A DNA stretch of 64,000 bases, from assembly GCA_965202585.1 (NCBI GenBank), contig OZ241826.1, positions 82,274,001 to 82,338,000 on the forward strand, in the 5' to 3' direction. A program made the position numbers and the translations under genes. Source of the DNA: Thalia democratica. Taxonomy: Eukaryota. Shown in pieces: positions 22,379 to 64,000 of the stretch (the stretch's first letter is position 1; the number at the start of each line of letters is the position of its first letter). Below the pieces are notes generated by a model, which made no database searches, was not told the origin of the DNA, and saw only the letters and a program-made list of their open reading frames with translations.

Positions 22379-22398
22379 TTAAACTTAATATTTTACAG

Positions 22399-35923: not shown

Positions 35924-36113
35924 ACAAAAGAATAAATTCATTATTTCTCTTCTAATAGTTGAGATCTCTTTATTTATTTTCTTAAAATCAAAACATATAC
36001 TATTATATGTTAATATCAAACAAAAGTTTATACAGACAACAATAGAAAGCTACTTATGTTTTATACTTAACAAGTTTTGAAAATTATATTAACAGAATAT
36101 TGTAATATTTTAG

Positions 36114-36213
36114 CTCATTCTCCCAACTGTCTACAAATAGGTCGGATCAAAATCATGAAAGCAAAACGTCAACTCTGTCAATTCAAAAAGAAAAGCAACA
36201 CCTTCAATTAAAG
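36114..36213 (+). CDS. Repeated exon S (SFSQLSTNRSDQNHESKTSTLSIQKEKQHLQPK-like); copies at 37792-37891, 39894-39993, 46106-46205
   Basis: aatattttag acceptor, AAG|gt donor; open in all four copies in this frame, while the alternative frame has TAA in two copies. Confidence 0.6.
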
Positions 36214-38618: not shown

Positions 38619-38705
38619 AACTCGAAAGCGGGGAAAAGTCTTCTACCGTTGCTATGAACAACCAGATGAACACGTTTGCGTCAAATGCCAACAAAGGATA
38701 TGATG
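38619..38705 (+). CDS. Repeated exon L (LESGEKSSTVAMNNQMNTFASNANKGYD), phase 1-1; copies at 41756-41842, 48154-48240
   Basis: aatttag acceptor, G|gtcagt donor; identical in three copies. Confidence 0.65.
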
Positions 38706-39089
38706 GTCAGTTTTGCTATTAGTTTTATTGTTTTTTATAAACAATCATTATGATTAATTGACTTAGAATTTATAGATAAATAATTAATTGTACTGTCATT
38801 TTAGCTTTTTGCAGTATAACGCGATGTTAGTAACTCACTCTCGTATTAGAACAATATATAATATAATAAATAAGATGTTTTTCTTCCAAAATACCATATT
38901 ATTTTAAAGTATTGTACGAAGTAGTTGGTAAAGTTAGTAAATTATATCTTTCAAAGCTTGAACACCTGCACCAAATTTTTTATTGTTTTCAGTATTTTGT
39001 TACATAAAGTATAATGTTTATCATTGTTTGATTTTGAAACTTTGGTATAAAAATTATTTTCCTTTTGAAACATTTTACTTTCACTTCAG

Positions 39090-39146
39090 TGTCGCGCAGT
39101 TTGTTGCAATTTCAATTAAAGTTCTGCTATTCGTTTAATCATGCAT
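39090..39146 (+). CDS. Possible repeated exon (V)SRSLLQF(Q/P)LKFCYSFNHA, phase 1-1; copies at 42219-42275, 48625-48681 (GC donor)
   Basis: cacttcag acceptor, T|gtgagt donor; CCA/CCG difference is synonymous. Confidence 0.4.
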
Positions 39147-42100: not shown

Positions 42101-43472
42101 CCTAATTTTTTATTGTTTTCAGTATTTTGTTACATAAAATATAATGTTTATCATTGTTTGATTTTGAAACTTTGGTATAAAAATTATTTTCTTTCTAAAA
42201 CATTTCACTTTACTTCAGTGTCGCGCAGTTTGTTGCAATTTCCATTAAAGTTCTGCTATTCGTTTAATCATGCATGTGAGTTCTTAGTTATTTTACTTAG
42301 GTACTTTTGAGAGTACTTTTGGTAGCTTATAGAAATCTTCCTTTAATTAAATAATTGTTTTCGATTCTGCAAACTGTATTCAGATAAGTAGGCTAATCAA
42401 AATAACATTAATCAAAGTGTTTGTATCTAAAATCAGCTGTTTAAGAAGAAAAGTCAATTGTTTCTTATTTATTAGTTGTATTCACAAGTTAACGTTATCA
42501 ACTACAAATATCTTATACGCTTATATTGTATGTGTTGTCTACAGTTTAATTATAATTAAATTACTAACATGTTTGATAGGAGAGTCAGTTTTGTGTCAGT
42601 GCATCGGTAAAATATTTCTCTGTTTCTTTTTTAATAACTCTGAATTTTAAAAAATACTTTTGTGCGTTTGTTTTGTTTAGTTGGAATAAATTTTTTGATT
42701 TGTTATACTAAAAGTATTTATTTTAATTTATCGTATTTTAACTTTTCAAGTTTCAATTAAAACATATTTAACTGTTAAACCAATTGACAATTTTTCACCT
42801 ATAAATCAGCTTATATGTTTAGTAGTAAACTTTGTGTTTGCATCACAAGCTTGTACTAAAAAGTATCAATTATGTTTTATTCATCATATTTTAGAAAATA
42901 CTCAATTTAAGTTTGTGTTGTGTTTTTATATTTAGTAGTTTTTGAACAAAGTTTTGACACATATTTGACTATTTTTTTTGAGGACCAAACTTGTACTAAT
43001 AACGGGTAGTAGTATAATTTAAAAGTACTCATTTATACCATAAGTTTGATTAATTCAAAGCAAGGTTTCCAAAACTCCATTCATAATCACGACCTTGGCA
43101 GGTATTTGAAAATAATCGGCTACCAATTTAAAATATCACCAATTCACTAAATAATTATTCTTTTAATTTTTCCGCCTTGCTATTATTGCCCAAAAAGGGC
43201 TTTACCATTCACTTTGGAAAAATGTGATTTAAAGTAATCTGTATTTGTAGTTTCTACTTAATATTATACATAAAACGTATTGTTTTTGAAAATTATTTGA
43301 AACAAAGATTTAAACAAATAGACACACATTTATACTGGTTTTCAAAAAAAAATATTTAACAGCTTTTTTTAGTACTTCTTAGTTTCTTTGTTTAAGTTCA
43401 AATTTAGTTTTCTCTTATCCTTAAGTATATGAAAATGATATAAATAGCTCAAGTATTTTAGCCTGTTGATTA

Positions 43473-43506
<34 letters not shown>

Positions 43507-43589
43507 GGATAACATTTGTAATGTTTTTTATTAATATTATCTTAGAATTTAAATATTAAATATGTGGTACAAATAAATTTGTTTCAGAA

Positions 43590-44320
43590 ATGGACGAAGA
43601 GTCACTTTTGCACAAATTGACATTTTTAATCGAAAATTTCAAATGTTATAATGAGTTAGCAAACTGTTTGTTTTATAGAAAACAACGAGTTAAAGATAAA
43701 GTTTTAAATTGTAAAAGCTCTTAGTTAAACCAGTTAAAGTAGGTGCAAAAGAGAAGCTTTGCGCATTTGTGAGACGTTTCGAGTATAAATGGGTAGGTGT
43801 AAGAAAAGCACAGCCTTACTTTAGCACATAGTGAAACCTAGTATAGAGTAATATTTTAGCACGGTGTCTATATTGCAGAAAGTGGCACTAAAACACGGAG
43901 TGTAACCTTGCATGTATCTTCATTTAGTATGATCAATAAATTTAAATTAAAAGTTAAACAATAATTAGTATTATACAGAACAAGATGTTAAAATTGACCT
44001 TAATAAGTTCAGCATCTTGTTGATGACGCACTTTAAGCGTTTTAAACAGTGAGTTAGTGGGAAGAATACTCATCGAAGTTTTTTGATTTAAAATTATCAT
44101 CATATAAAAAGTAATTCGGAGAAGCTTATACAAGTTAATTACCGTATATACTTAGAGAAATCACTTGCAGGTAGCGATAAGTTACAAAAAGTACTTTGTA
44201 GGCTCTAATTTTAAAGAAAAACTATACTTAATGATAAAAATAAGTAATAAAAAGCAAGAAGTTAGTAAATTAAACGAAAATTGAACTATGAAATACTTAT
44301 TTTGTGTTCTTAAATTTTAT
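43590..44320 (+). mobile_element. Degenerate coding remnant, possibly the N-terminus of a Transib-like transposase (duplicate at 49959-50690)
   Basis: MDEESLLHKLTFLIENF..., GAKEKLCAFVRRFEYKWVGVRK, SNSEKLIQVNYRIYLEKS across shifts; family assignment is from recalled resemblance only. Confidence 0.3.
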
Positions 44321-44769
44321 ATTTTCTTAAATCATTGAAAAAAGCACTTACAACTTATTTACAAATTTAGCTAGGCTGAAAAGGTTAGAATTAATATTTT
44401 GTTTATGTAAAACACTAATGCATACTTTTTTGAAAAACAAACATAAACAAAGCTGCAATTGATCTATACTAGAGCTGTATGAAAATCCGCTCAATGTGCT
44501 AAAGTGTCACTTTGTGCTGAAGTGACGCCTTGTTCTTAATAAAAAACTTGAATATATTTCACTTATAAAAGTTAGTTTGAATGCTATAGTACTTAAAGTA
44601 AATAATACACACAAAACCTTGTAAACAGGAATTGTTGTTATGTTAACAAGCATTTTAAGCTATTTTGTTTCATTTGAATTGTTGCCTTCAGAACCTTATA
44701 AATTTTATTGATACAATATAAGTAAAAAAAAATATCTTAGTGCTATTTTTTGATACTAACGGCAACAAA

Positions 44770-44882
44770 TAGGTGGTGAAGAAATTCAAGCTGTAACTTA
44801 CAATTGGTTTTTGGAATCATCGGTTGAGCGAATTCAGTGGTGGACGAATTCAGAGTGGCACCCTAGTTTCGGAGACAGACCT
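44770..44882. mobile_element. TIR-like end with tandem GGTGGACGAATTCA-type subrepeats (duplicate at about 51140-51252)
   Basis: ggtggtgaagaaattca ... ggttgagcgaattcagtggtggacgaattcagagtggcaccctagtttcggagacagacc. Confidence 0.45.
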
Positions 44883-45323
44883 ATATGTAACAATACTGTT
44901 GATATGGATCAAACGCATTGTTCTGACCAATCTTTTTAACAACTGTAAGTTGACGATTTTTTCGTACTAGTAAAGTTGTTGAGCTAAGTTTAAATAAACT
45001 TAGCATGTAAATAAAGAAAGAAAAAATAAACAATTATTGTTTAGTAATTTAGTACATGCAAACACTAACAAAACGACTTTTTTGTTATTCTTTTAACTAT
45101 GGTCATTGGCGGCAGAGAGTTTTTTGTTTTACATTTGAGAATTTATTATCATAGAAAAATTGATAGATTAATATTTGAGAATTCATTTTTAGCATTATTT
45201 TGAAGCGTTTGCAATATTTACTATTGCAATTTTTAGCTGTGCTATGTTAGTTATTGTGTAATTTTTCTCTTGTAAATAATTTAAGTTTTTAATAAGAATT
45301 TTTTTTTGTTTCAAACTAAGACG

Positions 45324-45381
45324 TTAACTGAACTATCGACTGAACTGTTAACCGAACTATTAACTGAACTATAAATAGAAA
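45324..45381 (+). repeat. Minisatellite of about 12-13-bp aactgaactatt units, 4 copies (also about 51695-51745)
   Basis: gttaactgaactatcgactgaactgttaaccgaactattaactgaactata. Confidence 0.6.
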
Positions 45382-46531
45382 AATTTAATTGAAAACGTTA
45401 TTTATACAAATTCGCGGCAATGAATAGTAGTTATGGATTCGATTTCTCTTTTATGTGTTTAGTAAGAAAAAACGAGAGCTAAAGGTATAAGCTAACGAGA
45501 GCTAACGGTTTTTGACCATTAGATTGAAGAAAATTATGTGTATAACATTTATCCAAGTTGAACTTTTATTTGTTACCGTTTATGTTGATAGGTGTAAAAG
45601 AACTAAACTTATTGAACTTCTTTGACCTATTTATTATTAATAAACAGTGCTTACTTAATGTTTCCCGTACTTAATGATGTAAGTAAGAAGAATTGATAGC
45701 CTTTCTTTAAAATTGGCTAGATTTACTGGAAAAAAAGTTGCTTGCATACCACTTTTGTATGTATATTATGGGAATTTTTAATAAATACAGTTTCCTAATA
45801 TTGGCGAAATAGTGTCATTTTTGGCAATAACTAATAAGTGAGCGAAAAAGTAAGTGGGTAAAATGATACTATTTAATAGAATAACTAGTATTTCTTTGTT
45901 AACCGGGCTGATTATAAAAATGATATGAGTACATAAAAATACTGTACATAAAAATGATATGAGTACATAAATATGCTTGTAAAGCCAGTTTTGATACTAT
46001 ATTTTAGTATCAAAAAAAAGTTTATGTTGCATACAAGAAAGCTACTTATATTGTATATTTAACAAGTTTTGAAAATTATCTAAACAGAATATTGTAATAT
46101 TTTAGCTCATTCTCCCAACTGTCTACAAAAGGGTCGGATCAAAATCATGAAAGCAAAACGTCAACTGTGTCAATTCTAAAAGAAAAGCAACACATTCAAC
46201 CAAAGGTTTATTTTTTATTTTTGTTTCCATTTAAAAATTGTCAATCTTTATGCCATCTTCATTGTGGTTCTGACAAAATAGCGGTTTCTCAATAAAAAAG
46301 TAAATATTTCTTTTAGATTTTTTTCTAGTTAATAACTTTACAATACAGTGACCTTCCGCATGACTTTTATTTTTGTAAATCTTCGAAATTTATCAAAAGT
46401 ATTTGGTTAAAATTTGTTTTAAAATTCGAGTTTCTTTGTTAAATAGTTTTTATAACTCTTTATACTTACAATTAATTACTATCCTTAAACCATAATTAAT
46501 GATTATAAACTGTAAATAATTACTTCATATA

Positions 46532-47298
46532 CAGTATACTATCGCTTAAGTACGCACTTTTTTTGGTACACACCTCGCCTTAAGTACGCACTTACCTAGA
46601 AAGACAAAAAAATCTAAATTTTCCTAAACTTAGAATTTTTCTAAAGACTTGTTCTATAGAGTCATTTTCTGACGCTTTCCATCCATTTTTCTAAACTTTT
46701 ATAAAATTTCTAAATTGTTTGTATTCAAATACTTTCAGAACACCTGCAAAAGAAAGGCTAATTTCAATGTGACATAATACAAAACTACTTAACCCCAAAA
46801 ACTTGTTACGATTTTTATAAAGTCAAAATAAACATTTAAAAAGAAGCAACAACAAAAAAAACTAAAGTTTGAAAAAAATTAATGAGCATCTTATCATTGT
46901 GCACTTATACTATAAATGTTTCTACTGATATAAACTTTCATATAAAAACAGTCGTGAAACGTTTTTCTTTCAAATAAAAAAATCGACCACTTTTTAGCTA
47001 ATGGAAAATTATAATATATGTATTAACTAAACTAAACTTAGCTTGACTAGCATTATGTAGAAACTTTTTATAGAATAAATAAATATTTTACATTTTGCAG
47101 ATTAGAATTATGTATCTAATGTTATTTAAAATAAAAAGACTTGTTTATTTGGCTTAATTATTTGGTGGCTAGTCGTAAGAAAGAAAACAAACAACTAAGT
47201 TTCATATTAAACTATGTCGTCAAAAAGTACGCACTACCCGTGCTAAGTACGCACTTTTTGGTCGGGTTCAATTTGCGTACTTAAGCGGTAGTCTACTG
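46532..47298. mobile_element. Tc1/mariner (pogo-like) MITE with TA TSD
   Basis: TA|CAGTATACTATCGCTTAAGTACGCA ... TGCGTACTTAAGCGGTAGTCTACTG|TA; empty single-TA site in the paralogous block near 40307. Confidence 0.9.
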
Positions 47299-50200
47299 TA
47301 TTTAATTTAATGCTTGCAACATAACATATTTTAATATACGGAAGTCACAAACTCAAAAATAAGTTTTGAATATTCTATTAAAAATCAAACATCTTATAGT
47401 TGCATCTTTCATGAAACCAAACTTCGGTATTTATATATCCTAAAGAGACATTTAGATTTCATTGGTGAAAAGATAAAAATGATACTTTTTAAAATTTCTA
47501 ATACAGTATGTTTGTTTATTATAATTATTAGCTATATTATTTAGAGGTAAAGAACGGTTGTAGACTATTAGATTGAAAAAGAATGTGTATTAAATTTATG
47601 AAAAATAAACTTTATTTCTAACTGTTTATGTTGATAAATGTAAAAGAACTAAACTTATTGAACTTTTTTGACGTATTTATTATTAATAAACAGTGCTTAC
47701 TTAATGTATCACATACTTTATATAGTAAGTAAGAAGAATTGATAGCCTTTCTTGAAAATGGGCTAGATTTACTGAAAAAAAAATTGTTTGCATACCACTT
47801 TTGTATGTATATTATGGGAATTTTTCAAATAATACGGTTTTCTAATGTTGGCGGAGTGGTGTCTTTTTTGGCAATAACTAATAAGTGAACGAAAAAATAA
47901 ATGGGTAACCAGCAAAAAGGTACTATTTAATAAAATAATTACTATTTCTTCGTTATCCAGGCTGATTATAAAAATGAGTTTGAGAAAGATTGGTGTAAGT
48001 TCATTATTTAAAGTTAAAATTTATTTTTACCTCTTTTTTTATAGTAAACTTTAATTTAAAGTAGGATGAAATCAGTTGACTTATTTAAACAATTATGGAA
48101 AAATTAAAAAGATTACAATCGCTTTCTTTAATAACAAAAAATACCTAATTTAGAACTCGAAAGCGGGGAAAAGTCTTCTACCGTTGCTATGAACAACCAG
48201 ATGAACACGTTTGCGTCAAATGCCAACAAAGGATATGATGGTCAGTTTTGCTATTAGTTTCATTGTTTTTTATAAACAATTATTATGATTAATTGACTTA
48301 GAATTTATAAATAAATAATTAGTTGTACTGTCATTTTAGCTATTTGCAGTATAACGCAATGTTAGTAACTCACTCTCGTATTAGAACAATATTGTATATA
48401 ATAAATGAGACGTTTTTCTTCCAAAACACCATATTATTTTAAAGTATTGTACGAAGTAGTTGGTAAAGTTAGTAAATTATATCTTTCAAAGCTTGAACAC
48501 CTGCACCAATTTTTTTATTGTTTTTAGTATTTTGTTACACAAAATATAATGTTTATCATTGTTTGATTTTGAAACTTTGGTATAAAAATTATTTTCTTTA
48601 TAAAACATTTCACTTTCACTTTAGTGTCGCGCAGTTTGTTGCAATTTCCGTTAAAGTTCTGCTATTCGTTTAATCATGCATGCGAGTTCTTCTTGTACTT
48701 TTGGTAGCTTATAGAAATCTTCCTTTAATTAAATAATTATGTTCGATTCTGCAAACTGTATTCAGATAAGTAGGCTAATCAAAATAACATTAATCAAAGT
48801 ATTTGTATCTAAAATCAGCTGTTTAAGAAGAAAAGTCAATTGTTTCTTATTTATTAGTTGTATTCACAAGTTAACGTTATCAACTACAAATATCTTATAC
48901 GCTTATATTGTATGTGTTGTCTACAGTTTAATTATAATTAAATTACTACTAACATGTTTGATAGGAGAGTCAGTTTTGTGTCAGTGCATCGGTAAAATAT
49001 TTCTCTGTTTCTTTTTTAATAACTCTGAATTGTAAAAAATACTTTTGTGCGTTTGTTTTGTTTAGTTGGAATAAATGTTTTGTTTTGTTATACTAAAAGT
49101 ATTTATTTTAATTTATCGTATTTTAACTTTTTAAGTGTCAATTAAAACATATTTAACTGTTAAACCAATTGACAATTTTTCACCTATAAGTCAGCTTATA
49201 TGTTTAGTAGTAAACTTCGTGTTTGCATCAAAAGCTTGTACTAAAAAGTATCAATTAAGTTTTATTCATCATATTTTAGAAAATGCTCAATTTAAGTTTG
49301 TGTTGTGTTTTTATATTTAGTAGTTTTTGAACAAAGTTTTGACACATATTTGACTATTTTTTTTGAGGACCAAACTTGTACTAATAACGGGTAGTAGTAT
49401 AATTTAAAAGTACTCATTTATACCATAAGTTTGATTAATTCAAAGCAGGGTTTCTAAAACTCCATTCATAATCACGACCTTGGCAGGTATTTGAAAATAA
49501 TCGGCTACCAATTTAAAATATCACCAATTCACTAAATAATTATTCTTTTAATTTTTTCGCCTTGCTATTATTGCCCAAAAAGGGCTTTACCATTCACTTT
49601 GGAAAAATGTGATTTAAAGTAATCTGTATTTGTAGTTTCTACTTAATATTATACATAAAACGTATTGTTTTTGAAAATTATTTGAAACAAAGATTTAAAC
49701 AAATAGATACACATTTATACTGGTTTTCAAAAAAATATATATAACAGCTTTTTTTAGTACTTCTTAGTTTCTTTGTTTAAATTTAGATTTAGTTTTCTCT
49801 AGTTTATCCTTAAGTATATAAAAATGATATATAATGTATATAAATAGCTCAAGTATTTTAGCTTGTGGATTAATTTATATATATATATATTTCGATAAAA
49901 TTTGTAATGTTTTTTATTAATAATATCTTAGAATTTAAATATTAAATATGTGTCAGAAATGGACGAAGAGTCACTTTTGCACAATTGACCATTTTTAATC
50001 GAAAATTTCAAATGTTATAATGAGTTAGCAAACTGTTTGTTTTATGGAAAACAACGAGTTAAAGATAAAGTTTTAAATTGTAAAAGCTCTTAGTTAAACC
50101 AGTTAAAGTAGGTGCAAAAGAGATGCTTTGCGCATTTGTGAGACGTTTCGAGTATAAATGGGTAGGTGTAAGAAAAGCACAGCCTTACTTTAGCACATAG

Positions 50201-53200
50201 TGACACTTTAGTATAGAGTAATATTTTAGCACGGTGTCTATATTGCAGAAAGTGGCACTAAAACACGGAGTGTAACCTTGCATGCATCTTCATTTAGTAT
50301 GATCAATAAATTTAAATTAAAAGTTAAACAATAATTATTATTATACAGAACAAGATGTTTAAAATTGACCTTAATAAGTTCAGCACCTTGTTGATAACGC
50401 ACTTTAAGCATTTTAACAGTGAGTTAGTGGGAAGAATACTCATCGAAGTTATTTTGATTTAAAATTATCATCATATAAAAAGTAATTCGGAGAAGCTTTT
50501 ACAAGTTAATTACCGTTTATACTTAGAGAAATCACTTGCAGGTAGCGATAAGTTAGAAAAAGTACTTTGTAGGCTCTAATTTTAAAGAAAAACTATACTT
50601 AATGATAAAAATAAGTAATAAAAAGCAAGAAGTTAGTAAATTAAACGAAAATTGAACTATGAAATACTTATTTTGTGTTCTTAAATTTTATATTTTCTTA
50701 AATCATTGAAAAAATTACTTACAACTTATTTACAAATTTAGCTAGGCTGAAAAGGTTAGTTTTAATATTTTGTTTATGTAAAACACTAATGCATACTTTT
50801 TTGAAAAACAAACATAAACAAAGCTGCAATTGATCTATACTAGAGCTGTTTGAAAATCCGCTCAATGTGCTAAAGTCTCGCTTTGTGCTGAAGTGATGCC
50901 TTGTTCTTAATAAAAAACTTGAATATATTTCACTTATAAAAGTTAGTTTGAATGCTATAGTACTTAAAGTAAATAATACACACAAAACCTTGTAAACAGG
51001 AATTGTTGTTATGTTAAAAAACATTTCAAGCTATTTTGTTTCATTTGAATTGTTGCCTTCAGAACCTTATAAATTTTATTGATTCAATTTAAGTAAAAAA
51101 AAATATCTTAGTGCCATTTTTTGATACTAACGGTAACAAATAGGTGGTGAAGAAATTCAAGCTGTAACTTACAATTGGTTTTTGGAATCATCGGTTGAGC
51201 GAATTCAGTGGTGGACGAATTCAGAGTGGCACCCTAGTTTCGGAGACAGACCTATATGTAACAATACTGTTGATATGGATCAAACGCATTGTTCTGACCA
51301 ATCTTTTTAACAACTGTAAGTTGACGATTTTTTCGTACTAGTAAAGTTGTTAAGCTAAGTTTAAATAAACTTAGCATGTAAATAAAGAAAGAAACAATAA
51401 ACAATTATTTTTTAGTAATTTAGTACATGCAAACACTAACAAAACGACTTTTTTGTTATTCTTTTAACTATGGTTATTGGCGGCAGAGAGTTTATTGTTT
51501 TACATTTGGGAATTTATTATCATAGAAAAATTGATAGATTAATACTTGAGAATTTATTTTTAGCATTATTTTCAAGCGTTGTTATATGTACTATTGCAAT
51601 TTTTAGCTGTGCTATGTCAGTTATTGTGTAATTTTGCTCTTGTAGTTAATTTAAGTTTTTAATAAGTATTTTTTTTTGTTTCAAACCAAGTACGTTAACT
51701 GAACTATTGACTGAACTGTTAACAGAACTATTAACTGAACTATAAATAGAAAAATTTAATTGAAAACGTTATTTATAAAAATTCGCGGCAATGAATAATA
51801 ATTATGGATTCGATTTCTCTTTTATGCGTTTAGTAAAAAAAAAACGAGAGCTAAAAGTATACGTTTTTAAAAAGCTAAGATCGTTTAATATTATTTTTAT
51901 TATGTTTTCATTCCTTTCAAAGTTGTAAAAAAACCAAGAATCGTGAAAAAACCTGGAGTTTGACAATTAAGTTAAAATAACCTTGAGTTGAGAAGTTTTG
52001 AAAAAAAATACTCAAAAGTAGCTGGAGCTTTTAACTATTTTTAGAAATAAAGTTATGAAATTTTAACTAGATACTAGAAATATATCATAAAGATAAAGCG
52101 TTTTTTGTTACAACCAACTATAATATTTAAAATAGATTTACAGTATTTATTTAACGTTTTTATAGTATTAAATACAGTTTTTTAACTTAAGTTAAATTTA
52201 TACTAAATATGGGTGAAAAACTTAATTTTGTTTTTAAATCTATGACAACTCTCTTAGTTAAATAAGACTTATTAAAACTTGTTTAGTATTCATCACACGG
52301 TTAAAACTGTTTTAACATTTATTTATTGTATCTACACTTAGTGTAGTTAATAGAAGTAGTAAAGTGTGTTTTATTGATAGTGTTAAAACTGTATAAAAAG
52401 GAGCTTCGACTTCATTTTTTCAACAACTGCTGTTCGTTTACATATACGTTCTGTTTCTATTAATTAAAATGAAAATTTCTTATTTAAAATGTTAACTTTA
52501 AAAACGAAAACATTTAACTTAGCAAAAAAAAAAAGGCAACAAAATATCTATCCAACGATCTGTTCATTTGTGTCCCTGAAAAGTAAAAATTGATTTGCTG
52601 TTAATAAACCTATTTAAATGTACTGTTAGATAACTTTTAAACTCGCATTTGTACTAATTAAATTAGATTTTTTTTTATATACAAATAACTGTTACAAGAT
52701 TTTTCTTAAGAACTTGTTCTGCAATTTTTGCAACTTTTGTTTGGCCCGCGAAGACGTTTTTTATTAAGTCCGGCCCGCGAACGAATTTTTATCACAATCC
52801 AGGTCTGCAAGCCTTATAAGGTGTGTGTTTAAAAAAAAGTATTTAAGGTTTCATTAAATAATTAATTTGTCAAGTAGATGCACCGTTATGAGTTGAACAT
52901 TCTACTATAGTTAAAACAACAATGCATGCGGTTGAAAAATAGTTTTACCGTTAGTATAAGCATGAATGTAGGCTGATTTTATAAATTTTACAGTATCATA
53001 GTCATAAAAACCTATTTTCATTGAAATGCTGTCAAATTTTGCAAACTGGTTTTAAATAAATATTTATTTTGAAGTTATAACCTACTTTAATGAGAAAAAT
53101 TAACTCATTAATTGCAGTAGAGTTTAAAATTATTAACTTTACTTTTTCTTATTTTTACTGATTGTGTTATCTACTAATTATACAAACAGAGTTGAACTAT

Positions 53201-55220
53201 TTTATTGCTCAAAAACATTATTTAATAATAACTTTGTCAATGAGAAAATTACATCTGTTTCGCTAATTTTAATTTGTAAATAATTACGTATCTGCCTAGA
53301 GTTAACATAATTATAAAATCTTTTATATTTAAAAACACTAAAAGTATTTACTTTTATTGATCAAAACCTTTGGGAGTGCAAAATTAGTTATAAACCCAAC
53401 TGAGAGTCTTGTACTTAGCTGAAACGTTAGTTAATAAAATTTATGGTTACATATAAAACTTTTATCACGTGTTCGTTTGCACTTTTCTTTGATATTTAAC
53501 ACTATTCACTTGTGCTCCATCGTTAGTTGTTTCTTAAGAAATAAGATATACTTACTATGTACGGTTTATGTTTGTTTTTTATTCACAATTTTATGGAGTA
53601 TTTACCAACTTTCCTTGCTAAAATTTTGCAGAGTATAAACTATAAATGTATTGGTTTTCGTTTTTTTTTCTAAAGACTACCTTGTGATCGTGTTATTCTT
53701 AGTAAGACATAAAGTAAAAATAAAATGATTTTAAAAGACCTGAGATGAAAAAAGAAGTATGTTGCATATGCTGAACATAAAGTTCGGTTTTTAATTACTT
53801 TTAAGAAACAAGTTCAATACTTGAAGTATTTTCATTTTCTTTGCTTCAACCTTAACAAGTTATTACTTTTGTCTGAACTTGCTATGCAGCTTACGAATAA
53901 AAGTTTTTTTTATAGGTACAATGTTACACAGAAAATATAAAAATATTTTTATGTTACTTAAAAACTTTACTGTGTTGTACAACTGCTTTCGCATTTATTA
54001 GTTTTAACTCTGATGTAGTATAAATAGTTACAAATTAAACAGAATTACTTTTTTTTTAAAGTAAAGAAAATTTTTCAACTAATCTGAATCATATTAGAAT
54101 CTGCCGACCCTTAGTATAAACGTTAGTTAGTATAAAAAGTAAGATTAATTTTGAGATATTTACAAATTATATATAATATTATAGAACTGTTTAAACTCTG
54201 TTTTCAGACAGAATCTATGTAAATAGTTATGTATAATTAAAATAAGTTAAAAATGACTGAATCCCTACATAGTATTGAATGTTGAGAAGTAGTTGAACAA
54301 AGGTAAACATTTTTTTAGCATTCTTAAATTATTTTAAATGAACAATCATAAAAGTTTATCATACATTGTATTTTGTATTTTACCAAAAAGATCCAAATCG
54401 AATTTAAATGAAGTTTTTTATTAATAACTTATTTATCTTCTTTTTTTAATGTTTAAAATTTAGTATTAAGTCATATTATGTATTTAAAACGCTTATTTTA
54501 AAATGACCATTTTAAAATAAACATATGTAAATGAAAAGACAAAAGTCTGCTACTAAATTGTTGATCTTCTTTAAACATGATACGCAATTAAAATATTTCA
54601 ATATTTAAAAAAAAAATTACGTTAAGTATTGTCAGTTAAAAAAAAATTAAACTAATTTATCAACTAAAACATATATGATAAGAACAAGTGTTGAATTTTG
54701 TTAAACTTTTTTAACAACTTTCGATTTATTTCCCTTGTCAAAAATATCATCGTTTTAGTTTTAACTGTATCTTATACGATTAAAAACTATTATAATTACA
54801 ACAATTATCAATTAGATAAATTATTTATAAAATTAAAAACTAAATAAACGATTATGTTTTTTTAAAACCCCAGATAACCTTAATAAAAGTTTTTTTTGAG
54901 CATTAATAAATCAAGGTAATTCTATACTTAGAAAAAAAGCTTTGAATTCTCAAACTTATCACTTTAAAATATAAAAGTATAATACTTGGTGAATTGAAAG
55001 CGACTATTAACCAGTTTTTGGTTAGGGGATTTTTTATTGGTTTAGTAGAAAAAAACTGGTAACAAAAAAGGTACTCAAATAGTAAGTGGAATAAAAGAAA
55101 TACAACCGAAAACATTAACTTGGCTACCTCAAGAGAGTTACGAAGTATTCGACAAGGGTCAAAATAAATTTTTGGGAAAAAATAGACCCTTGTCGAACTA
55201 TTCGACAAGGGTCAAAAAAA

Positions 55221-55334
55221 AATAATGAAAAAAAAAATTGGAAAAAAAAAGGGCCGAAAGGACGAAAAATTGCGCCGCGGCGCAATTTTTCGTCCTTTCG
55301 GCCCTTTTTTTTTCCAATTTTTTTTTTCATTATT
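55221..55334. repeat. Perfect 114-bp palindrome (57-bp arms, no spacer)
   Basis: Base-by-base complementarity about the centre 55277/55278 (TTGCGCCG|CGGCGCAA), including matched homopolymer lengths. Confidence 0.95.
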
Positions 55335-55633
55335 CTCCAATTCTCAATCTCTTTCCCCAATTTTTTTTTCAATCAATTTCTTTTTTTTTTTTCAAAAAAA
55401 TCTTCCCCCGCTTTTTCGCAACTTTTTTTTTGAAGCTTCTACTCCCCTCACAAACGCCTTTAAATGACTCCAACTCTGACCTTCAAAGCGGTTTGCAACA
55501 TGCACCCGCTTCTTCACCTGCTTATACGAGTGCTTCACCTCCCGACCGCGCACATTCTAGAGTCGCCCCGTTTTTTTTCTTCACCTCTAAAATCGCACGT
55601 TAGTTCATGTTTGCACCGTTCGCAGCTTTTCAT

Positions 55634-55924
55634 GTCAGAGCTTTTACCTTGCCAAGTGCAGCTGTTTCTATTCACCTACTACGGCCGTCTTTACCTTCTG
55701 CACTTGCCACTTGACCTGCTAAGGTCTCTTGTTCGTTCTAGACTGCCTGCTTCAGCCTCTTACCCGTACACTGCTTTTCAAGTCAGAGCTTTTACCTTGC
55801 CAAGTGCAGTTGTTTCTATCAACCTACTACGGCCGTCTTTACCTTCTGCACTTGCCACTTGACCTGCTAAGGTCTCTTGTTCTTTCTAGACTGCCTGCTT
55901 CAGTCTCTTACCCGTTCACTGCTT
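55634..55924 (+). repeat. 148-bp tandem duplication, about 2 copies
   Basis: gtcagagcttttaccttgcc at 55634 and 55782. Confidence 0.9.
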
Positions 55925-56468
55925 ACCGCTGTCTCAAGAGTACTTAAATTGCCAGTTCTGCTTTCACGCGTTATGTTTTCCCTGCAACAGCCACTCTCGT
56001 CAGCTGCTGCAGCCTTTTGCTATCATATACTCGTCGCGACGACTTCACAAACTTCAAGCATAAAAGCCTATACACTTTATAACAGTAGCCTTTCAACCCG
56101 CCTTAGCCTCAACACGATACAACGTCCTTTCTAATAATGTAAAGTAAAGCATACGCGTATGATGCTAAGCTGCAGTTGTTCAACTGGCTACCTCAAGAGA
56201 GTCAGTTGAACTGGCTACCTCAAGAGAGTCAATTTTTTTTCAAAACGTTACAGAAATAGCCTATCTACTATAGCAATTGAATTGTACTGTGAAATGTTAA
56301 TACTATTTTCTAGCCTATGAATGACTGATGTGTATCACTTAACAAATATTTATTTTTATTATGTTAAAGTTTGTTTCTACACATTTTATTAACAATCATC
56401 ACTGTTTGTTTTAAATCCTGTTGTAAAAGTTGAAGTTGTAAATTTTCAACAGACACATTAACAATCAC

Positions 56469-56607
56469 TACGAGATCAACTTTATGGAGGAGCTTACTTT
56501 GAAGGGAGTCAGCCATTTCTACGCTTACGTTGAGGAGAAAATGAAAGTGCATTGCCTCAACACACTGTTTGCTAAATTGCAGATCAACCAAGCCATCATC
56601 TTCTGTA
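56469..56607 (+). pseudogene. DDX6: Isolated 46-codon fragment of DEAD-box helicase DDX6/Me31B/Dhh1
   Basis: [46 protein letters not shown] matches the DDX6 inter-domain signature [42 protein letters not shown]; homology stops on both sides. Confidence 0.92.
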
Positions 56608-56608
56608 T

Positions 56609-59600
56609 CCTAGCCAGTAGTGTTGTTAAAATTTTTTGTTGTTCCTTTTTTAAAACTCTAAAATCCCTTTATGAAACTATATATCAACATAAATCGAACA
56701 GATTTTTGAAGAAAACGAATTCGTCTACATTTACAAATCTTGGTTTAATTTTTTTGCTGCATGCCAAAAGTACTTCGATAATCCAAACACAGAAAATTTC
56801 TCTTCTCTCTCCAAAAGAGCTTATAGAATTGCAACAATGTACAACATTTTAAGAATAATGTTTGAAGGTTGCCGTTCAATCGACTCGCGGGGTGTTGTGG
56901 CAAAACTTGAATCAATTTTTCAAATAAAACTTGAAACAGATTTCACCAGAAAACTTCGTAAAATAGTTTGTTTCATTCAACACGTTTAATATTGGCTACT
57001 ATTAGCTTATTTTGCTTCGTATAACAATAATATTGTGATTACTAACTAATGTCACACAGACTTTTACTGTTTGGTTAGTATTTACAATCATTTTAAAATA
57101 AAGTGAACTTTGTGAAGTTTTTCTGTACTTAACAATTAAAACCCATAAATATTAATTTATTTTTAGACTTTAAAAATATTTTTTAGATAACTTTACAACT
57201 AAGCAGTATAGCAAAATTAGTTTAAGATTTTTTTGTTTAGAGTTCATCAGTTCGTTTCTAGAACCCATAGAAAATGTGCGATACTATGTTTTGTTTTTAA
57301 GTGCATAGGAGAGGTAAACACTTTTTTGAAAATTTGATCTTATTTTATATAGTTTTTAATTACAGATTTAAAAAATTCAAAGTATTTTTGAGATATAGCC
57401 AGTCAAAGTTGAGGCAACAATAGATTTCTATGGGAGGCGCAAACTAAAACGGTAAATAACTAGAAATCACTAAAAATATATCTTCTCCTACGTTTTTTGA
57501 ATTAACTATCTCAAATTTTTAATTCTAAAATTTTGTCGGAAATAAAAAGATTAAAAATTTATAACAAAAAAACATGAAATTTTGTTTTGTTTATTTTTTA
57601 TAAAATAATTTATTTTTTAATTTATTTAAATTTTGTTCCTATATAATTTTCTAAATACATCAAGGAACACTTCCTGAAGTTTTGAGGTAGTTATCTCAAA
57701 AAACGTAGGAGAAGAAAGTTTTTACTGATTTTTAGTTATTTGCCGTTATAGTTTGCTCCTCCCATAAGAAACCTGTTGTTGCCTCCGACTTTGACCAGCT
57801 ATATCTCAAATATATAATATTTTGAATTTTTAAAGCTGTAAAAACCATCTACTATCTTAGTAGTAACTAAATAAAATAAGATCAAATTGTGAAAAAAGTG
57901 TTTACTCCCCTATGCGCTAAATAAACTTTATGTTCTTTGGATTTTGGTTATTTTTGTTTCTTTTTCAGTTTTGGTGAATAATTAGTATATTGTTGTTTTT
58001 TCAAAAAATATTTTGTTTTAAGAAAATGTAGCTTCGCTGAGTATCTATAACTTTTGTCAAACACTTTAAAATAAAAAGATCTGAATTTTGTCTTTAATTG
58101 AAAATTTGAATTTGTTCAATATTTTAGAAACATGGTAATGTCTTTTTCAATTGCCTCCTGTTTTGGAAAGGGATGAAAAAGGGATATATTAACTGCATGT
58201 TTACATTGTATCACCAAAACGTGAAATATACTCAAAATGAGCTTTTAAATATCGCCATGTTCAGATATGGGGAACTCAGTGAGAAAGCGCTGAACACCAT
58301 TGCTCAGATAAGAGTAAGTTTATCTTAGTTTTATGGTTATCTCGCATTTTTTAATCAAAGTTATAAATTTTAATTACTAGTATTTTGTATAATAAAAGTT
58401 ACTATCTATTTTTTTATTGATTGAATTCAACAAAAGTTTGTATAAGTATAAATCGAAACGTTTAAATTTGTATTTGAGAGTAAGTTACATAAAACTACTA
58501 AATTTCAGAACTAGTGGTACTGCTACTAATATTACTTTTAAGTCTTTTATAGTGCAGATTTTTTTTAAATTTTGGAGGTAGAGACTCAATTTAAGATAAA
58601 GTTTATAATCTTAGTGAAATAAAATAGTTATCTATAACTTCCTTGTTTACAAATCATTGGTCTTTCATTTTCAGTAAAATGACTACATTATTTTAATATA
58701 CTCAATACATTTAACTTGCCGCTTTTTATAGTGCTAATTCAAACATAGTTATAGTACATATTTGTCAACTAATTAATTATTTAGGCCAAAATGATCTGTA
58801 ATTATGAACCAGTGGTTAGCAATTTGCGAGATTTCCACAAAAATACTTTCCCCTTTAAAGAGCTATTAAAAGATCCTGAAAAATTTGCTGACAATTGGTA
58901 TAAAAACTTTATGGAGAGCAAGAAACTACCGCGAATTGAAGATATAAAGGAAAAAGCTCCTAATGACCGGTGTTTGTTGGAAAAGATGACGGTAGTATTT
59001 AACTTTGACATTAAATAATTTTTAAGATGAACGTTTAAACTAAAATCATAATGCTTAAAAAGCTTAAAACAAGTCTTTTAATTGTTTGTAACTAATTAAC
59101 AGTTTTATTAGCTATTTATATACAGAGTTATCTTTAGAACAAATGCAACATTGTAACTTCCACTAAAATTCTAAACAACTGTCTAAACTAGACAAAACCA
59201 AAGTTATTGATTACAGAATGTGAAAAAAAACTAATTGTTTAATACCCATAGGGGAAAGTGGGTCAAGCCATTTTTATACATATAAAGTTACTAAATAATT
59301 TGGAATTCTTAAATTCCCTGATTTTTGAACATAAATCACTACAAGTCCTAGAATTTTAACAATTTTTACGTGTTAAGTACTAAAGTTTCAATTGGACACA
59401 AAAAAACTATCCTGTTGATCAGGATTTCCAAAACTTTTTTCAAATGGCCCCCTTTAAAGATATTAAAAAAGCTATGGCCTCCTACAACAAATTTACTCAA
59501 AAACTACCCTTAAAAACACCGAAGACCTTTTTTCTTTGCCTTTCATTTAAAATTATAGAATATCTAGTGTTAGTTTCAAAACTACCCTTAAAAACACTTT

Positions 59601-62600
59601 AGGCCTTATTTTTTTGCTCTTCATCAGCAACTCCAGAATATCTAGTGTAAGTTTTAAAACTACCATTAAAATACCTGAGACCTTTTTTTTTTGCTCTTCA
59701 TCTGCAACTAAATAATATATAGTGTAAGTTTCAAATTATTACCCAACTGTGGCTCCTTTACTGCTCATGGCCCCCCTTCTTCCCCTTTGCTGCTCGCGGC
59801 TCCTTGAGTATCAGTCATGGCCTATTTTGGGAAACCCTGGTGTAGACGCTCTCGGCCTCTAGCCTTACAAAGTTAGTTTTAAGCACGCTAAGCGTGCCCA
59901 ACCGTCCGAGAAGACGTCAGGTACTAGTAGGCATACTCGCATAAGTCATCCTGAGCTTGAGTAACCAACACAATGTGTTATCAGACAATACTGTGAGAGC
60001 AGAGGATGATATAACATAAAAAAATGTAAACGCACGTTTCTAATATAAACACTGATATTTAGTAAAATGAGCTACAGTTCAATTATCCACAAATGCTAGA
60101 AACTGATTTCTGTTGCTCACGACACAGAATTAGTCTTTTAAAAGGTCTTTTATATTGAAACTACGGCCAAAATACCACATGTGATGAAACTGTGGCCTAA
60201 ACTTGACGAGGTTTCATAAAAAACCTCAATTGTGAACAAATGCATTTTTGCTTCACATGACGCATCACAAACGCCGTCTTGAACATAAATAAACCCAAAC
60301 AAATGTCAATACTAAGGTTAAGTTTTGCTTATTAAAAGCCAACAAAGCTTACCATTACAAGCAAAAACGATCGATAGTTAAGCATTCTAATAAATGTTTG
60401 CTTTAAAAATTAAGAAAAAAAAAAGTAAATCTACACAGGGTAAGGGCAGTTACGATGAGCGGGAGTCAGATTTTCTCAACAAGCTCGCAGAAGACAGAAT
60501 CCAGCGTCTTGACCAAAACACAAAAGGTCCATTAAAATTTGAAACAATTGAAAAGGCTCTTGAAAAGCACAATTACATAGCTGATGATGATGTTGATCCC
60601 CTCAACAATTTGTACAAACGACAAAAAATTGTTGAATTTCAACGACAGATTCATAATGGGATTGAATCACCAATCTGGCCTGCAATCAATGTGAGTGTTG
60701 TTACATATTAATATTTTTATTTACTTAGCTTACTAGAATTACGACCATAGGGGGTTAAAACACTTTTTTTTACAAAAAATATCTTCGGCTTTTATATGAA
60801 AGCTTCAAGTACAAACTACAAGCCAGTTTTTACAGAATTCAAATATATCATTTAACTTTTGAGATTTTTTGTTTTTTTGTAAAAAGTTTCTGATACAAAC
60901 GTATGGACCGCAAATTTTTCGGGGTCAATTTTCTTGAAAACTTAAAAAATCACTAAAAATCTATCTCCTACATTTTTCAAGCAATCTTCTTCAAATTTTC
61001 AGGAAATGATCCTTATATTAAGGAAAAAATCGTAATAAAAATAAATTTAAATAGTTAAAAAAAATAAAAATTTTATCACAAAAAAAAAAAAAGTTTTAAC
61101 ATAAAATTATTTAAAGTCCAAAGTAACGTTTTTTTGTTATTGTATAAAAATTAGACTGTGAAAGTTTGAATGAGATTGCTTAAAATGTAGGAAGAGATAG
61201 ATTTTAAATTAAATAGTCTGTATTTGCTGTTTTAGTTTTCCCATCCCATAGGGAACCTATTATGCGGCCCAACTTTGACTGGTCATATCTCAAAAATAAT
61301 TTGAAATTTTAAACGATAAAAAGCATCTTGAAGCTTATAAAAAACTCTATAAAATAAGATCAACTTGTAAAAAACATAGCTCTCACCATATGGCCTTAAC
61401 TAACTTTTATTTTTAATGATTTTTTTATACTAAATAGCTAATTGTTTTTTAAATAAGTTTAGGATTCGTATAAAAAACCTTAATACTGTTTTAAACTTGA
61501 TAAAAACAAACTTTAATGCCGAATTTTAGAAAATAAGGAAACAAATTGTGACTCTTAAGATCACGGTTTTTCAGACTTTTTCTTAACCGCCCACTTGACA
61601 TAAAATTACAAAATAATAGCATGCCTTTAATATCTATCGCCTTTTACTAGCTGATTACCCATTTATCTTTTTCCCGCATTACTAGTTTTTCCCCCTTATA
61701 GCCAAAATCACCCCAAAGTTTTAGAACCCGTTTTCGCCCACTTTAAGAAACCCTACTTAAAAAGATAGGATACGCTCAGTTTCAACCCGCGCAGATAATT
61801 AGAAGGAAAATAATTAAACAAATAAGAATAATTAGAACGAAAAAATACCAACTAAGGGTAAGGGTTAGGGTTAACAGTAATAGTAAAAAAAAAATTAAAA
61901 AAAAGTTTCAAATGGGATTTGATAGGGTTCGAATTGATTCGGGTGGGAAATAATTCGGGTGGGAATTGTGAGTATACCTAAAAAGATATAACATTTGAAA
62001 TCATATTATTATGATATAAATTTACAATAAATATCATAGTTTAATATCTTTCTTTAATTTTTGTTTTATAAAGCTTAATATCTTTTTAAGCTTGTAGCCT
62101 AATTTTTGTTAATTTATGATAATAGTTACAACAATCCGTTTTGTCTGATTATATTTAAAGTTATATAAGCTAGTATTTTTCTTACGCTTATAATTTTTTG
62201 CTAAAATTGACTAAATTTTTAAAAACAAATATAATAGTAAAAATAACTTACAGTTCAAAGATAAAACTACTTAGATATCTGTATCTACTCCCTAGAATTC
62301 ATCATAAAAAACAAAACATTTTCTAAACAATTATATTTAACTTAAATTATAACTAAGATTAAAAATCTCAATAACTAGTTTTAAGTTAAAATCAAAATAG
62401 TTATCATAAATACAAAACTAATGATTATTTACTACTTCTTTTTTCACTAAAAGCTTCGCATAAGGTGGCCAGACCAGCTTGTCTGAAACTCTTTAAAACC
62501 ATGGAATTAAAAGTTTAGGTTAAAAATGTAAAAAAAAACCTGAAATATGTTATTTTTTAATCCTAGGAAATTCTGTAATGTTAAAGTTTAAAAAAAAACT

Positions 62601-64000
62601 TTTTGAAATTATTGCATGGCTCGTATAAGAACTTCACAATCGAAAGATTTAACAATAAACCTAGCATTTAATGATTTAAAGTTATAATAAAAACTAAAAA
62701 TCAGCTTTATAATTTACATATAAAAATCCCAAAAGACATCTAAAAAAATTTATTTACTAACTTAATCTATAATAAATATTTTCTTCTAACAAAAGTAGTA
62801 GAATAATAATGTTAAAATTATAAGAAATCTTGGATTTTTTTACTTTTTTTGTAAGTTTAACAATGTAAAATAGTTGTAAATGTAAAGTTAAATATTTCCA
62901 AAACCTAAAGAATGACCTCTTTGTAAACAAACATTTATTAATAAAAAACAAAAATGTTATAATTTTTCAAAATTTATCGCTTTTTTGTTTAAGGGCATAG
63001 GGTGGTCCACCTTGATTTTTACAAGTTGATCTTATTATATAGAATTTTATCTGAGCTATCAGACATTTTTAATCGCTTGAAAAAATTCAAAGTAATTTTT
63101 GAGATATGAGTGATCAAAGTCGGTGACCTTAATAGGTTCTTAATGGAAGGCGCAAACTAAAAACGCGAAAAAAGACCATTTCAATAAAAATCTATTTCCT
63201 CCTTCATTTTTTAAGCAATCTTCTTCGAATTTTTGAAAAGATTAAATGCAGGAATTTCTTTTTGAAAAATACAATTTTTATTGAAAAAAACCACCTATTT
63301 TTTTCTTTTTTTTGATCTAAAAGTTTAATTTTTAAATATTTTTAAATTCCAACACTTAACGTCTTTTAAACTTTAAAAGGAACGTTTCCTGAAAGTTTGA
63401 GGTCTCTAGCTCAAAAAATGAAGGAGAAAATAGATTTTTAGTGATTCTTTAAATTTCCGGAAAAATTGACTCCAAAAAATTTGCAGTCCATATGTTTATA
63501 TAAGAAAATTTTTATACAAATAATAATATCTCAAAAGTTAGATAAGATTTTTTAATTCTACAAAAACTGGCTTGTAGTTTGTACTTGAACCTTTAATATA
63601 AGGTCCAATGTTATTTTTAGTACAAAAAAAATGTCGGATCCCCATATACCCTTAAACTTAATATTTTACAGAAGCTATATTAAAAACTATTTAACCTGGT
63701 ATTGCTGTGAACCTATGTGCAGTAAGGGATTTAAAAAAATCTTAGTAAGAGTAAATCTTCTTTTTTAAATTTATTTTTTCAAGCCCTTATACTTTTTTTC
63801 TTGTTTTATGAGTTTATATTTGTCTTTATTTTTTTTTGTAATTTTTTATTATAATTTATTACAATTAACTTAAAAAGTGATCATCAAAAATTTTGTAGAG
63901 TATTTATCTAATAAAATTATATGTTAAATTCAAACAAAAATTTAAACATTACTACACTGTGTGTAATATGAATAAATTTAAATACTTCTTGTGTTATATC
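56609..64000 (+). pseudogene. 5'-truncated segmental duplicate of 15430-22729 with exon copies at 58128-58313, 58785-58991, 60439-60690, 62454-62518, 63672-63744
   Basis: Collinear near-identity to copy 1; runs off the window end. Confidence 0.95.

Follow-up and report, generated by a model that had tools for sequence, protein, structure and literature searches.

The window analysed here, a 64-kb stretch of the chromosome-scale contig C1 of Thalia democratica, raises the question of why short copies of the 28S rRNA site targeted by R2, Pokey and I-PpoI should occur at the borders of a non-coding element located outside the rDNA. A previous inspection of the window (the sequence-only reading) had described three copies of a 20-mer from this site, and had interpreted the element as carrying cleavage-resistant mimics of the rDNA target, mobilised by R2-class machinery or acting as a decoy for it, or alternatively as bounded by a long target-site duplication. 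Taken as a whole, this interpretation was partly supported by the analysis.

The three copies of the 20-mer are real, but only two of them are exact. On the minus strand of the 64-kb window, exact matches were identified at 56212-56231 and 56185-56204, and a match with one mismatch at 55121-55140; no further instance with up to three mismatches was present in the window, and 100 shuffles returned none. The exact copies are arranged in tandem with the 27-bp period originally described (Table 1). The linkers of these units read GTTCAAC and GTTGAAC, and paralogues of the element contain either one or two units. The third copy is absent in the C5 and C7 paralogues, and together with the adjoining repeat module X it was found attached to another family member at locus L024 and as a 97-bp fragment in L071. 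Independent paralogues end at 55141 without a third copy, which travels with module X, and its interpretation as a long target-site duplication was discarded.

Table 1. Organisation of the element and adjoining sequence (positions refer to the 64-kb window).
Feature	Positions	Strand	Remarks
Two tandem 27-bp units	56178-56231 (56178-56204 / 56205-56231)	-	Each comprises an exact 20-nt 28S patch and a 7-nt linker
Copy of the putative rDNA promoter / transcription-start block	56113-56177	-	Core holds the CATACGCGTATG palindrome
GC-rich non-coding body	55441-56112	-	47.6% GC vs 23-28% in flanks; 3' half homologous to other family members
Weak 5'ETS-like block in body	56028-56051		24 nt, E=0.004 (blastn)
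Tandem duplication in body, 148 bp	55616-55911 (55616-55763 / 55764-55911)		Halves 94% identical
A/T-rich tract	55341-55440	-	Contains the family-conserved GAAGCTTC ... GCGGGGGAAG block
Perfect palindrome, 114 bp, spacer-less	55221-55334	.	A-run and T-run on its flanks
53-bp hairpin-plus-T-run modules, terminator-like	55141-55220	-	55141 is the 3' boundary common to independent paralogues
Third 28S patch, variant TAAC...GCCAA	55120-55140	-	Part of adjoining repeat module X, outside the element
Repeat module X	about 54500-55119		
DDX6-like exon	56454-56607	+	Co-duplicated with the element

The assignment of the 20-mer to the R2/Pokey/I-PpoI site of 28S was borne out, and the patches are intact sites rather than split halves of the target, as had been noted. 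The reported 19/20 match, with a G that disrupts TTAA at the cleavage point, holds against the textbook 28S only; against the 28S of this genome the match is 20/20. TTAAGG is a universally conserved 28S position, and the approximately 252 intact 28S genes detected genome-wide all read TTGAGG, with no TTAAGG copy of the 28S site anywhere in the genome. TTGAGG being native to all 28S genes, with a genuine R2 insertion at this same position, the motif constitutes an exact copy of the species' own 28S and not a cleavage-resistant mimic. The replacement of TTAAGG by TTGAGG in the whole rDNA array removes both the TTAA used by piggyBac/Pokey elements and the I-PpoI site, and R2 inserts nonetheless. 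A literature search on the TTGAGG variant returned nothing relevant.

In the family to which the element belongs, the patches are 20-28 nt long and reproduce the native 28S sequence around the R2 insertion site, the 20-mer spanning about -14 to +6 relative to that site. The match to 28S reaches 22-23 nt in L003, L017 and L025, and 28/28 in L008. Searches across the genome identified 786 matches to the 20-mer, about 255 of them in 28S, whereas two neighbouring 28S 20-mers used as controls had one exact match each on a chromosome-scale contig, and yielded 268 and 332 matches in total, the extra ones being mismatched. The genome-wide search hence revealed a specific over-representation of this motif outside the rDNA. 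A scan of many gigabases should occasionally turn up a 19/20 match to any one 20-mer, but a coincidental similarity between a repeat terminus and the 28S site is rendered vanishingly improbable by the perfect agreement with the species' own 28S, by the longer matches at the aforementioned loci and in the Transib-type family described below, and by the location of the patch beside other rDNA-derived sequence.

The 28S site is a live R2 target in this genome. The rDNA contains a full R2 of about 4.2 kb, inserted at the 28S site, with a single 990-aa ORF encompassing a reverse transcriptase (RVT_1, E=1e-32) and a C-terminal endonuclease region, and matching the R2Bm structure 8gh6 over residues 188-969 (E=2e-90). 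Its junctions in the rDNA read CTCTTGA on the upstream side and CAAATGCC on the downstream side. A deletion derivative of 1.48 kb occupies the same 28S site in the rDNA, and Rfam detected no ribozyme in the rDNA insertion. The window element presented no similarity to the full R2 or to the 1.48-kb derivative in blastn and nhmmer searches. With no split target and with spread by segmental duplication, the proposal that it is mobilised by R2 was not sustained. Furthermore, junctions of upstream 28S with the motif (255) and of the motif with downstream 28S (252) are almost equal in number, indicating that no such element sits in the rDNA. An R2-dependent non-autonomous element (SIDE), which would occupy the 28S site with a split target, was likewise rejected, the element being on C1 and its patches intact.

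In agreement with the initial description, the element body is GC-richer than its flanks (Table 1) and non-coding, with no ORF longer than 132 aa in the element and none conserved among family members. The 148-bp duplication was also confirmed. The A-rich tract exists, but it is internal and does not represent a poly(A) tail, and the CATACGCGTATG palindrome, previously designated a terminal hairpin, is instead the core of a promoter block. Rfam searches of positions 50000-62000 detected no rRNA and returned only spurious miRNA and snoRNA matches on the palindrome.

The statement that no other rDNA is present did not hold. In its 5' part, the element reproduces the rDNA promoter and the beginning of the 5'ETS, and the terminal hairpin of the family matches the rDNA terminator. 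The rDNA promoter is itself putative, assigned by position alone; in rDNA the block precedes 18S by about 490-510 nt, at the point of change from AT-rich to GC-rich spacer. The window's promoter block is 85% identical to positions 6280-6324 of rDNA unit L070 (blastn), and blastn matches between the family and the rDNA immediately preceding the 5'ETS span up to 89 nt at 89% identity (E=1e-24). The block could be aligned across rDNA and six family members. A family profile matched the rDNA promoter (E=1.6e-16) and the first rDNA 3'ETS hairpin and T-run (E=1.4e-5), which presents the same hairpin/T-run architecture. The profile also matched the window element at 56240-56113 (E=3e-16) and 55663-55089 (E=2e-42), the terminator homology of the window copy being drawn via the family alignment only. 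Beyond the short patch, no 18S, 5.8S or 28S coding sequence was detected: the profile matches promoter, terminator and patch only, and 18S, 28S, ITS and R2 were rejected as sources of the body. The combined homology to the promoter and 5'ETS start and to the terminator region identifies the element as an rDNA-derived unit.

The promoter core returned 471 matches, against about 268 rDNA units, which leaves about 200 ectopic copies, with arrays on contigs C2, C5, C6 and C7. An exact patch is found 10-40 nt upstream of the promoter in 44 of these copies; within the largest arrays, the majority of copies have no exact patch in that range. Sequence was read for about 12 loci out of roughly 200. Family members carry a patch immediately ahead of the promoter, and most have another directly past the terminator hairpin; this second patch is degenerate or missing in L022, L025 and the C5 and C7 paralogues. 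The patches differ in orientation and number, sometimes forming palindromic pairs, and several members have a forward patch at the 5' end and its reverse complement at the 3' end. The family has spread by segmental and tandem duplication, and all the family loci seen are locally amplified. Large tandem arrays are nevertheless common in this genome, and this array context may therefore mean nothing.

These data point to a non-coding mini-unit derived from rDNA, probably of Pol I type, with 28S patches at its borders as the most plausible description of the element, and we consider it the probable one. The element reads on the minus strand, its core running from 56231 to 55141. The unit consists of a copy of the putative rDNA promoter and 5'ETS start, followed by about 0.75 kb of GC-rich leader-like sequence and by an rDNA-type terminator region made up of the palindrome, GNRA hairpins and T-runs, with the rRNA gene missing between promoter and terminator. 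Such units would most likely serve as templates for RNA polymerase I, giving rise to a structured non-coding RNA that ends in the hairpin/T-run region. Conserved helices were identified, with a few compensatory changes among eight related sequences, the structure deriving from the same alignment.

The main competitor of the mini-unit is a neutral relic, that is, a decaying rDNA-spacer fragment (orphon or pseudo-NOR debris) without function, carried along by segmental duplication, in which the patches are rearrangement scars. Its spread by segmental or tandem duplication only, in a genome full of tandem arrays, and the many array copies without an exact patch are in line with this explanation. 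Conservation at five old loci is not: identity amounts to 96% for the patch and 93% for the promoter, vs 70% for the body, 55% for the spacer and 48% for upstream sequence. Conservation of promoter block and patch far above that of the body suggests that the units are probably still in use. In addition, the family promoters have in common derived changes relative to the rDNA promoter, a pattern that favours constraint over conversion from rDNA. Every family member retains its own perfect palindrome with 52-58-bp arms, although the palindrome sequences differ by about 20% from member to member, body blocks are conserved even between the most divergent subfamilies, and no 18S or 28S remnants occur nearby. 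A neutral relic is thus regarded as unlikely, and the patches as probable cis elements, serving as a protein-binding or recombination site, rather than as debris.

A corrected form of the initial proposal would have the exact R2-target patches bound or nicked by R2 protein; they might then divert it as a decoy, offer a landing pad or trigger recombination, the last driving local tandem amplification in the manner of the Pol I-dependent yeast HOT1 at a new locus. The patch is centred on the insertion site of this genome's R2, its over-representation outside the rDNA is specific and its conservation strong, and the variable orientation and number of patches, palindromic pairs included, are expected of a breakage-prone site. 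Local amplification was observed at every family locus seen. Against this, R2-family sequence is restricted to rDNA contigs, bar one 170-nt match at 79%, and the 20-mer does not include the -37 to -15 region footprinted by the R2 N-terminal domains (PMC11204384). These two observations make a decoy, in particular, unlikely. No similarity to R2 RNA ends was found, and the amplification may be the genomic background already mentioned. Overall, a role of the patches as R2 protein targets is judged unlikely.

The arrangement of the patches also resembles the ends of a transposable element, with the 28S motif either forming inverted repeats at the termini or representing a long target-site duplication generated by insertion into a 28S-like site. 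Several members present the forward 5' patch and reverse-complemented 3' patch as 20-bp inverted termini, and the window copy has direct patch copies at both ends. However, sequence beyond the patches is homologous from locus to locus, which places the patches within a larger shared segment, and no target-site duplications were seen at the family loci. The loss or degeneration of the 3' patch at the loci listed above and the balanced junction counts in rDNA are further evidence against a transposable element, which we regard as very unlikely. The homologous flanks and lack of target duplications also led us to reject LTR, PBS, Helitron and TIR-transposon readings of the ends. A Pokey-like piggyBac element or MITE was rejected because there is no TTAA at the ends and the species' 28S site reads TTGA, and a snoRNA-guide or small-RNA-target role of the 20-mer because no supporting boxes were found. 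The motif does have another carrier, a non-autonomous Transib-type transposon of 2.36 kb with CACAGTGGGCTG at both ends, CACAGTG termini as inverted repeats and 5-bp target duplications in three of three copies (one imperfect). About 404 copies contain the 28S-like 31-mer of this family, in which the match to 28S extends to about 29/32, and the window element is not a member of it.

A wider version of the mini-unit reading was also considered, in which the units constitute a working, undescribed class of Pol I-driven non-coding genes. The patches would here be functional, for example nicked or bound by R2 machinery or by a nucleolar factor, and the promoter/terminator module would stimulate recombination in the surrounding 20-45-kb segments and their local tandem amplification, making the units a natural counterpart of yeast HOT1, with palindromes regenerated by hairpin-templated repair. 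In its entirety, this scenario is rather improbable.

Several known systems share features with the putative mini-units. Pokey and mPok of Daphnia are piggyBac transposons found at the TTAA of the same 28S site, with rDNA spacer-derived repeats (PMC3849761, PMC10946416). Like Pokey, the window element is a dispersed repeat tied to this site and carrying rDNA spacer pieces, but it lacks a transposase, a TTAA duplication and defined transposon ends; its spacer-derived parts are a gene promoter and a terminator, and the 28S site lies inside the unit instead of being the insertion target. R2 and its internally deleted, non-autonomous derivatives (SIDEs) involve the same 28S site, and this genome has both a full R2 and its derivative of about 1.5 kb, yet the element contains no R2 sequence, lies outside the rDNA and is flanked by intact sites. 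Dispersed rDNA fragments are known as rDNA orphons and spacer-derived satellites, and spacer promoter duplications occur in the IGS of Xenopus, Drosophila and mouse. The family resembles these in having locally amplified rDNA promoter and terminator sequences away from rRNA genes, and differs in forming a discrete promoter-leader-terminator unit with conserved ends and 28S patches, present in about 200 copies on several chromosomes. Yeast HOT1, composed of the Pol I enhancer and promoter, is an ectopic recombination hotspot. In both cases, a Pol I promoter (putative in the units) and terminator/enhancer-region DNA lie outside the rDNA, here always within locally amplified segments, although HOT1 is an experimental construct.

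Finally, 5S-promoter SINEs and Cassandra TRIMs are mobile elements with a captured rRNA gene promoter (PMC10946416), and thus also exemplify its reuse by a dispersed repeat family; theirs is an internal Pol III promoter spread by retrotransposition, whereas here the promoter is upstream and of the 45S type, with no evident mobility mechanism. Outside the rDNA, reuse of rRNA promoters is already known for 5S (Pol III) in SINEs and Cassandra, as are spacer pieces inside Pokey. A literature search did not find a description of a family of about 200 copies with large-rDNA promoter, leader and terminator and conserved R2-target copies. If transcribed, these units would be rare animal Pol I genes other than those for rRNA, and would offer a natural system in which to study the effects of Pol I promoter/terminator modules on the surrounding chromosome.

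Marine metatranscriptome data contained two small, low-depth contigs, one on the body and another on the promoter/patch region, which could derive from DNA; the contig over the presumed promoter and patch is not predicted by a start site downstream of the promoter. The left junction of the element (54747-55206) is bridged by contigs from independent runs. On the opposite side, homology with paralogues stops at 56607/56608, which is also where a 41-kb tandem duplication has its junction, and loose contig ends were observed at 56607 and 56609.

The motif search recovered the three minus-strand copies of the 28S target sequence described in the sequence-only reading (see table); no other match with up to 3 mismatches was found in the 64-kb window, and 100 shuffles of the window returned 0 matches. 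As had also been noticed, the two 5' copies form a tandem repeat with a 27-bp period, the 148-bp duplication is real, and the body is non-coding and GC-richer, with no ORF longer than 132 aa in the element stretch and a GC content of 47.6% in its body versus 23-28% in the neighbourhood. The element stretch is covered by contigs from three other runs, and one contig from another run bridges its left junction.

Features of the window and of the comparison stretches (L-numbers) from the same genome
Feature	Position	Strand	Remarks
20-mer TGACTCTCTTGAGGTAGCCA, exact	56185-56204 and 56212-56231	minus	motif search of window
20-mer TGACTCTCTTGAGGTAGCCA, third copy	55121-55140	minus	one mismatch; motif search of window
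148-bp duplication	55616-55911		confirmed
114-bp perfect palindrome	55221-55334		spacer-less; confirmed
Family profile match	55663-55089	minus	E=2e-42
Family profile match	56240-56113	minus	E=3e-16
Left junction of element	54747-55206		bridged by one contig
Module shared by paralogues	56607 to 55141
DDX6-like exon	56454-56607	plus	inside shared module
Tandem duplication	15430-22729, repeated at 56609-64000		period ~41 kb
Complex local tandem repeat	36000-52000		~6-kb units, 85-96% identity; inside the 41-kb duplicated unit
Longest window ORF	24287-25354	plus	355 aa, GTG start, local GC 34%; no Pfam match
C4 fragment, 97 bp	L071 (G000:C4:46562200-46564300) 1026-1122		98% identical to window 55071-55167
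R2 derivative, 1.48 kb	L067 3189-4669
Full-length R2, ~4.2 kb	L075 (G000:C79:93000-98600), about 641-4888
Transib-type transposon, 2.36 kb	L072, about 7480-9841	reverse complement	also seen in L073 and L074
5S rRNA gene	L070 9197-9315	minus

The near-universal eukaryotic 28S sequence at the R2 site is CTCTTAAGGTAGC, and the sequence-only reading had regarded the G of TTGAGG as an A-to-G change carried by all three copies. In the 801-Mb genome, a 25-mer encompassing the R2 site and downstream 28S returned 252 matches, on small contigs at a spacing of about 15.1-15.8 kb, within sequence identified as the 28S gene (Rfam LSU, 5.8S and SSU matches). All 252 read TTGAGG, and the genome has neither a TTAAGG version of the 25-mer site nor a canonical CTCTTAAGGTAGC copy at the 28S site. 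The R2 site is interrupted in about 16/268 rDNA units (about 6%; 252 intact versus 268 matches to a control 20-mer). One interruption is a non-coding, internally deleted R2 derivative with five tandem ~42-nt repeats, whose relatives, including copies of about 4.2 kb, lie on rDNA contigs only, except for one 170-nt match at 79%. The full-length R2 presents a single 990-aa ORF with a reverse-transcriptase domain, matching the solved Bombyx R2 protein over the RT and C-terminal regions (E=2e-90). The 28S sequence reads ...CTCTTGA before R2 and CAAATGCC... after it, with a 6-bp target deletion for both the full-length element and its derivative. Since the 28S natively reads TTGAGG and the resident R2 inserts there, the window motif reproduces 20/20 positions of the species' own 28S, at the site used by its own R2. 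The change thus does not set the element apart; the identity of the 20-mer stands and the notion of an altered target falls. In the TTGAGG state the Pokey/piggyBac TTAA is lost and the I-PpoI site is altered, yet R2 insertion there persists. Counted genome-wide, ~252 intact 28S genes carry CTCTTGAGGTAGC, as seen in L063 and L070 (G000:C26). The rDNA intergenic spacer also contains a 5S rRNA gene, on the 18S-28S strand ~3.4 kb upstream of 18S.

The claim that no other rDNA is present did not hold. Roughly 90 nt following the 5' patches are common to a wider family of dispersed mini-units and match a part of the rDNA unit lying some 490-510 nt upstream of 18S, precisely where AT-rich spacer gives way to GC-rich sequence (best pair: 89 nt, 89%, E=1e-24); by its position, this block is a putative rDNA gene promoter. 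A profile built from five family members at five loci and searched against the rDNA unit matched the promoter/start block (E=1.6e-16), the first hairpin with its T-run downstream of the 28S 3' end (E=1.4e-5) and the 28S patch (E=1e-4). The rDNA 3'ETS comprises GNRA-loop hairpins and then T-runs, an architecture shared by the family's 3' part. These promoter-block and terminator matches, with no rRNA genes detected in the element by Rfam, indicate that the element is probably an rDNA-type promoter-leader-terminator unit devoid of rRNA genes.

The genome-wide search confirmed that the body occurs elsewhere, with about a dozen near-full copies on C1, C5, C7 and small contigs, spaced 30-45 kb or more. 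Independent paralogues (91-93% identity) share exactly the module that ends just inside this third copy, and contigs of other runs have loose ends at 55141 and 56607/56609. Copies of the body are few and arose by segmental duplication. The three motif copies had alternatively been explained as a long target-site duplication. The third copy (variant TAAC...GCCAA) is, however, part of the adjoining repeat X; X and this patch are joined to another family member in L024, and the C4 fragment, which contains the element end, the third patch and the start of X, is isolated in unrelated AT-rich DNA and looks like a templated patch insertion. Because the third copy travels with X in both instances, the target-site duplication was rejected. 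The borders of the DDX6-like exon (56454-56608) are intact and splice-site-like; no more than 2 bp separate its 3' end from the limits of the paralogue homology and of the 41-kb duplication, and beyond it the paralogues present different intron-like sequence.

The 28S patch spans 20 nt in the window, 22-23 nt in L003, L017 and L025, and 28/28 nt in L008, where it is inverted and located past the terminator hairpin; palindromic pairs of patches are also present. The 786 genome-wide 20-mer matches with up to 2 mismatches comprise ~255 in 28S, ~130 in the mini-unit family and ~400 in an unrelated carrier, a Transib-type non-autonomous transposon (about 404 copies) with CACAGTG termini (CACAGTGGGCTG) and a 5-bp target duplication. 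This transposon harbours, 190 bp from one end, a 32-nt 28S-like stretch corresponding to helix 69 plus the R2 site, and its copies decay like neutral ones. Two neighbouring 28S control 20-mers gave 268 and 332 genome matches, each with a sole exact match on a chromosome-scale contig, at C6:29.46 Mb. With so few exact matches of its neighbours there, the R2-site stretch is specifically dispersed, and it was acquired independently at least two or three times. The two C6 matches (G000:C6:29458679 and 29463905) are 5.2 kb apart versus about 70 nt expected; C6 may thus carry a 28S copy whose R2 site is occupied by a long insertion, possibly the edge of the rDNA array. Since the patch covers sequence on either side of the R2 cut, its source is an uncut gene or rRNA; spanning about -14 to +6, it lacks the -37 to -15 region footprinted by the R2 N-terminal domains (PMC11204384).

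The promoter core pattern returned 471 genome matches versus about 268 rDNA units, implying ~200 ectopic copies; most of these lie 20-60 kb apart in arrays of megabase scale on C2, C5, C6 and C7, and in 44 copies an exact patch lies 10-40 nt upstream of the core. Mean pairwise identity among five loci was highest for the 28S patch (96%) and promoter block (93%), followed by the terminator hairpin (83%), palindrome (80%), body (70%), spacer (55%) and upstream flank (48%). Family promoters share differences from the rDNA promoter, so their conservation does not derive from copying of rDNA. Every family member has its own perfect spacer-less palindrome (arms of 52-58 bp, 104-116 bp in total; examined in the window, L003, L018, L022, L024 and L025). 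As the palindromes remain perfect despite ~20% sequence difference between loci, the two arms co-evolve through some DNA-level process, which could be hairpin-templated repair or conversion. Blocks of the body are kept between the most distant subfamilies, three helices show a few compensatory changes that are suggestive only, and no ORF is conserved among family members. Two small contigs from a 2019 marine metatranscriptome run map to the body (55910-56042, 98%) and the promoter/patch region (56078-56223, 91%); they could represent RNA of this species or a relative, or DNA carry-over.

The descriptive part of this account is well supported; we infer that the units may be transcribed by Pol I and that the 28S patches may have a role. 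Parallels are offered by Pokey, which has the same 28S target and contains spacer repeats (PMC3849761), by R2 deletion derivatives, by yeast HOT1, by rDNA orphons together with spacer-derived repeats, and by Cassandra and 5S-promoter SINEs (PMC10946416). In none of them does a 45S-type promoter occur together with a leader, a terminator of rDNA type and conserved R2-site copies. The family is filed as rDNA-derived dispersed sequence, in a combination absent from these known parallels.
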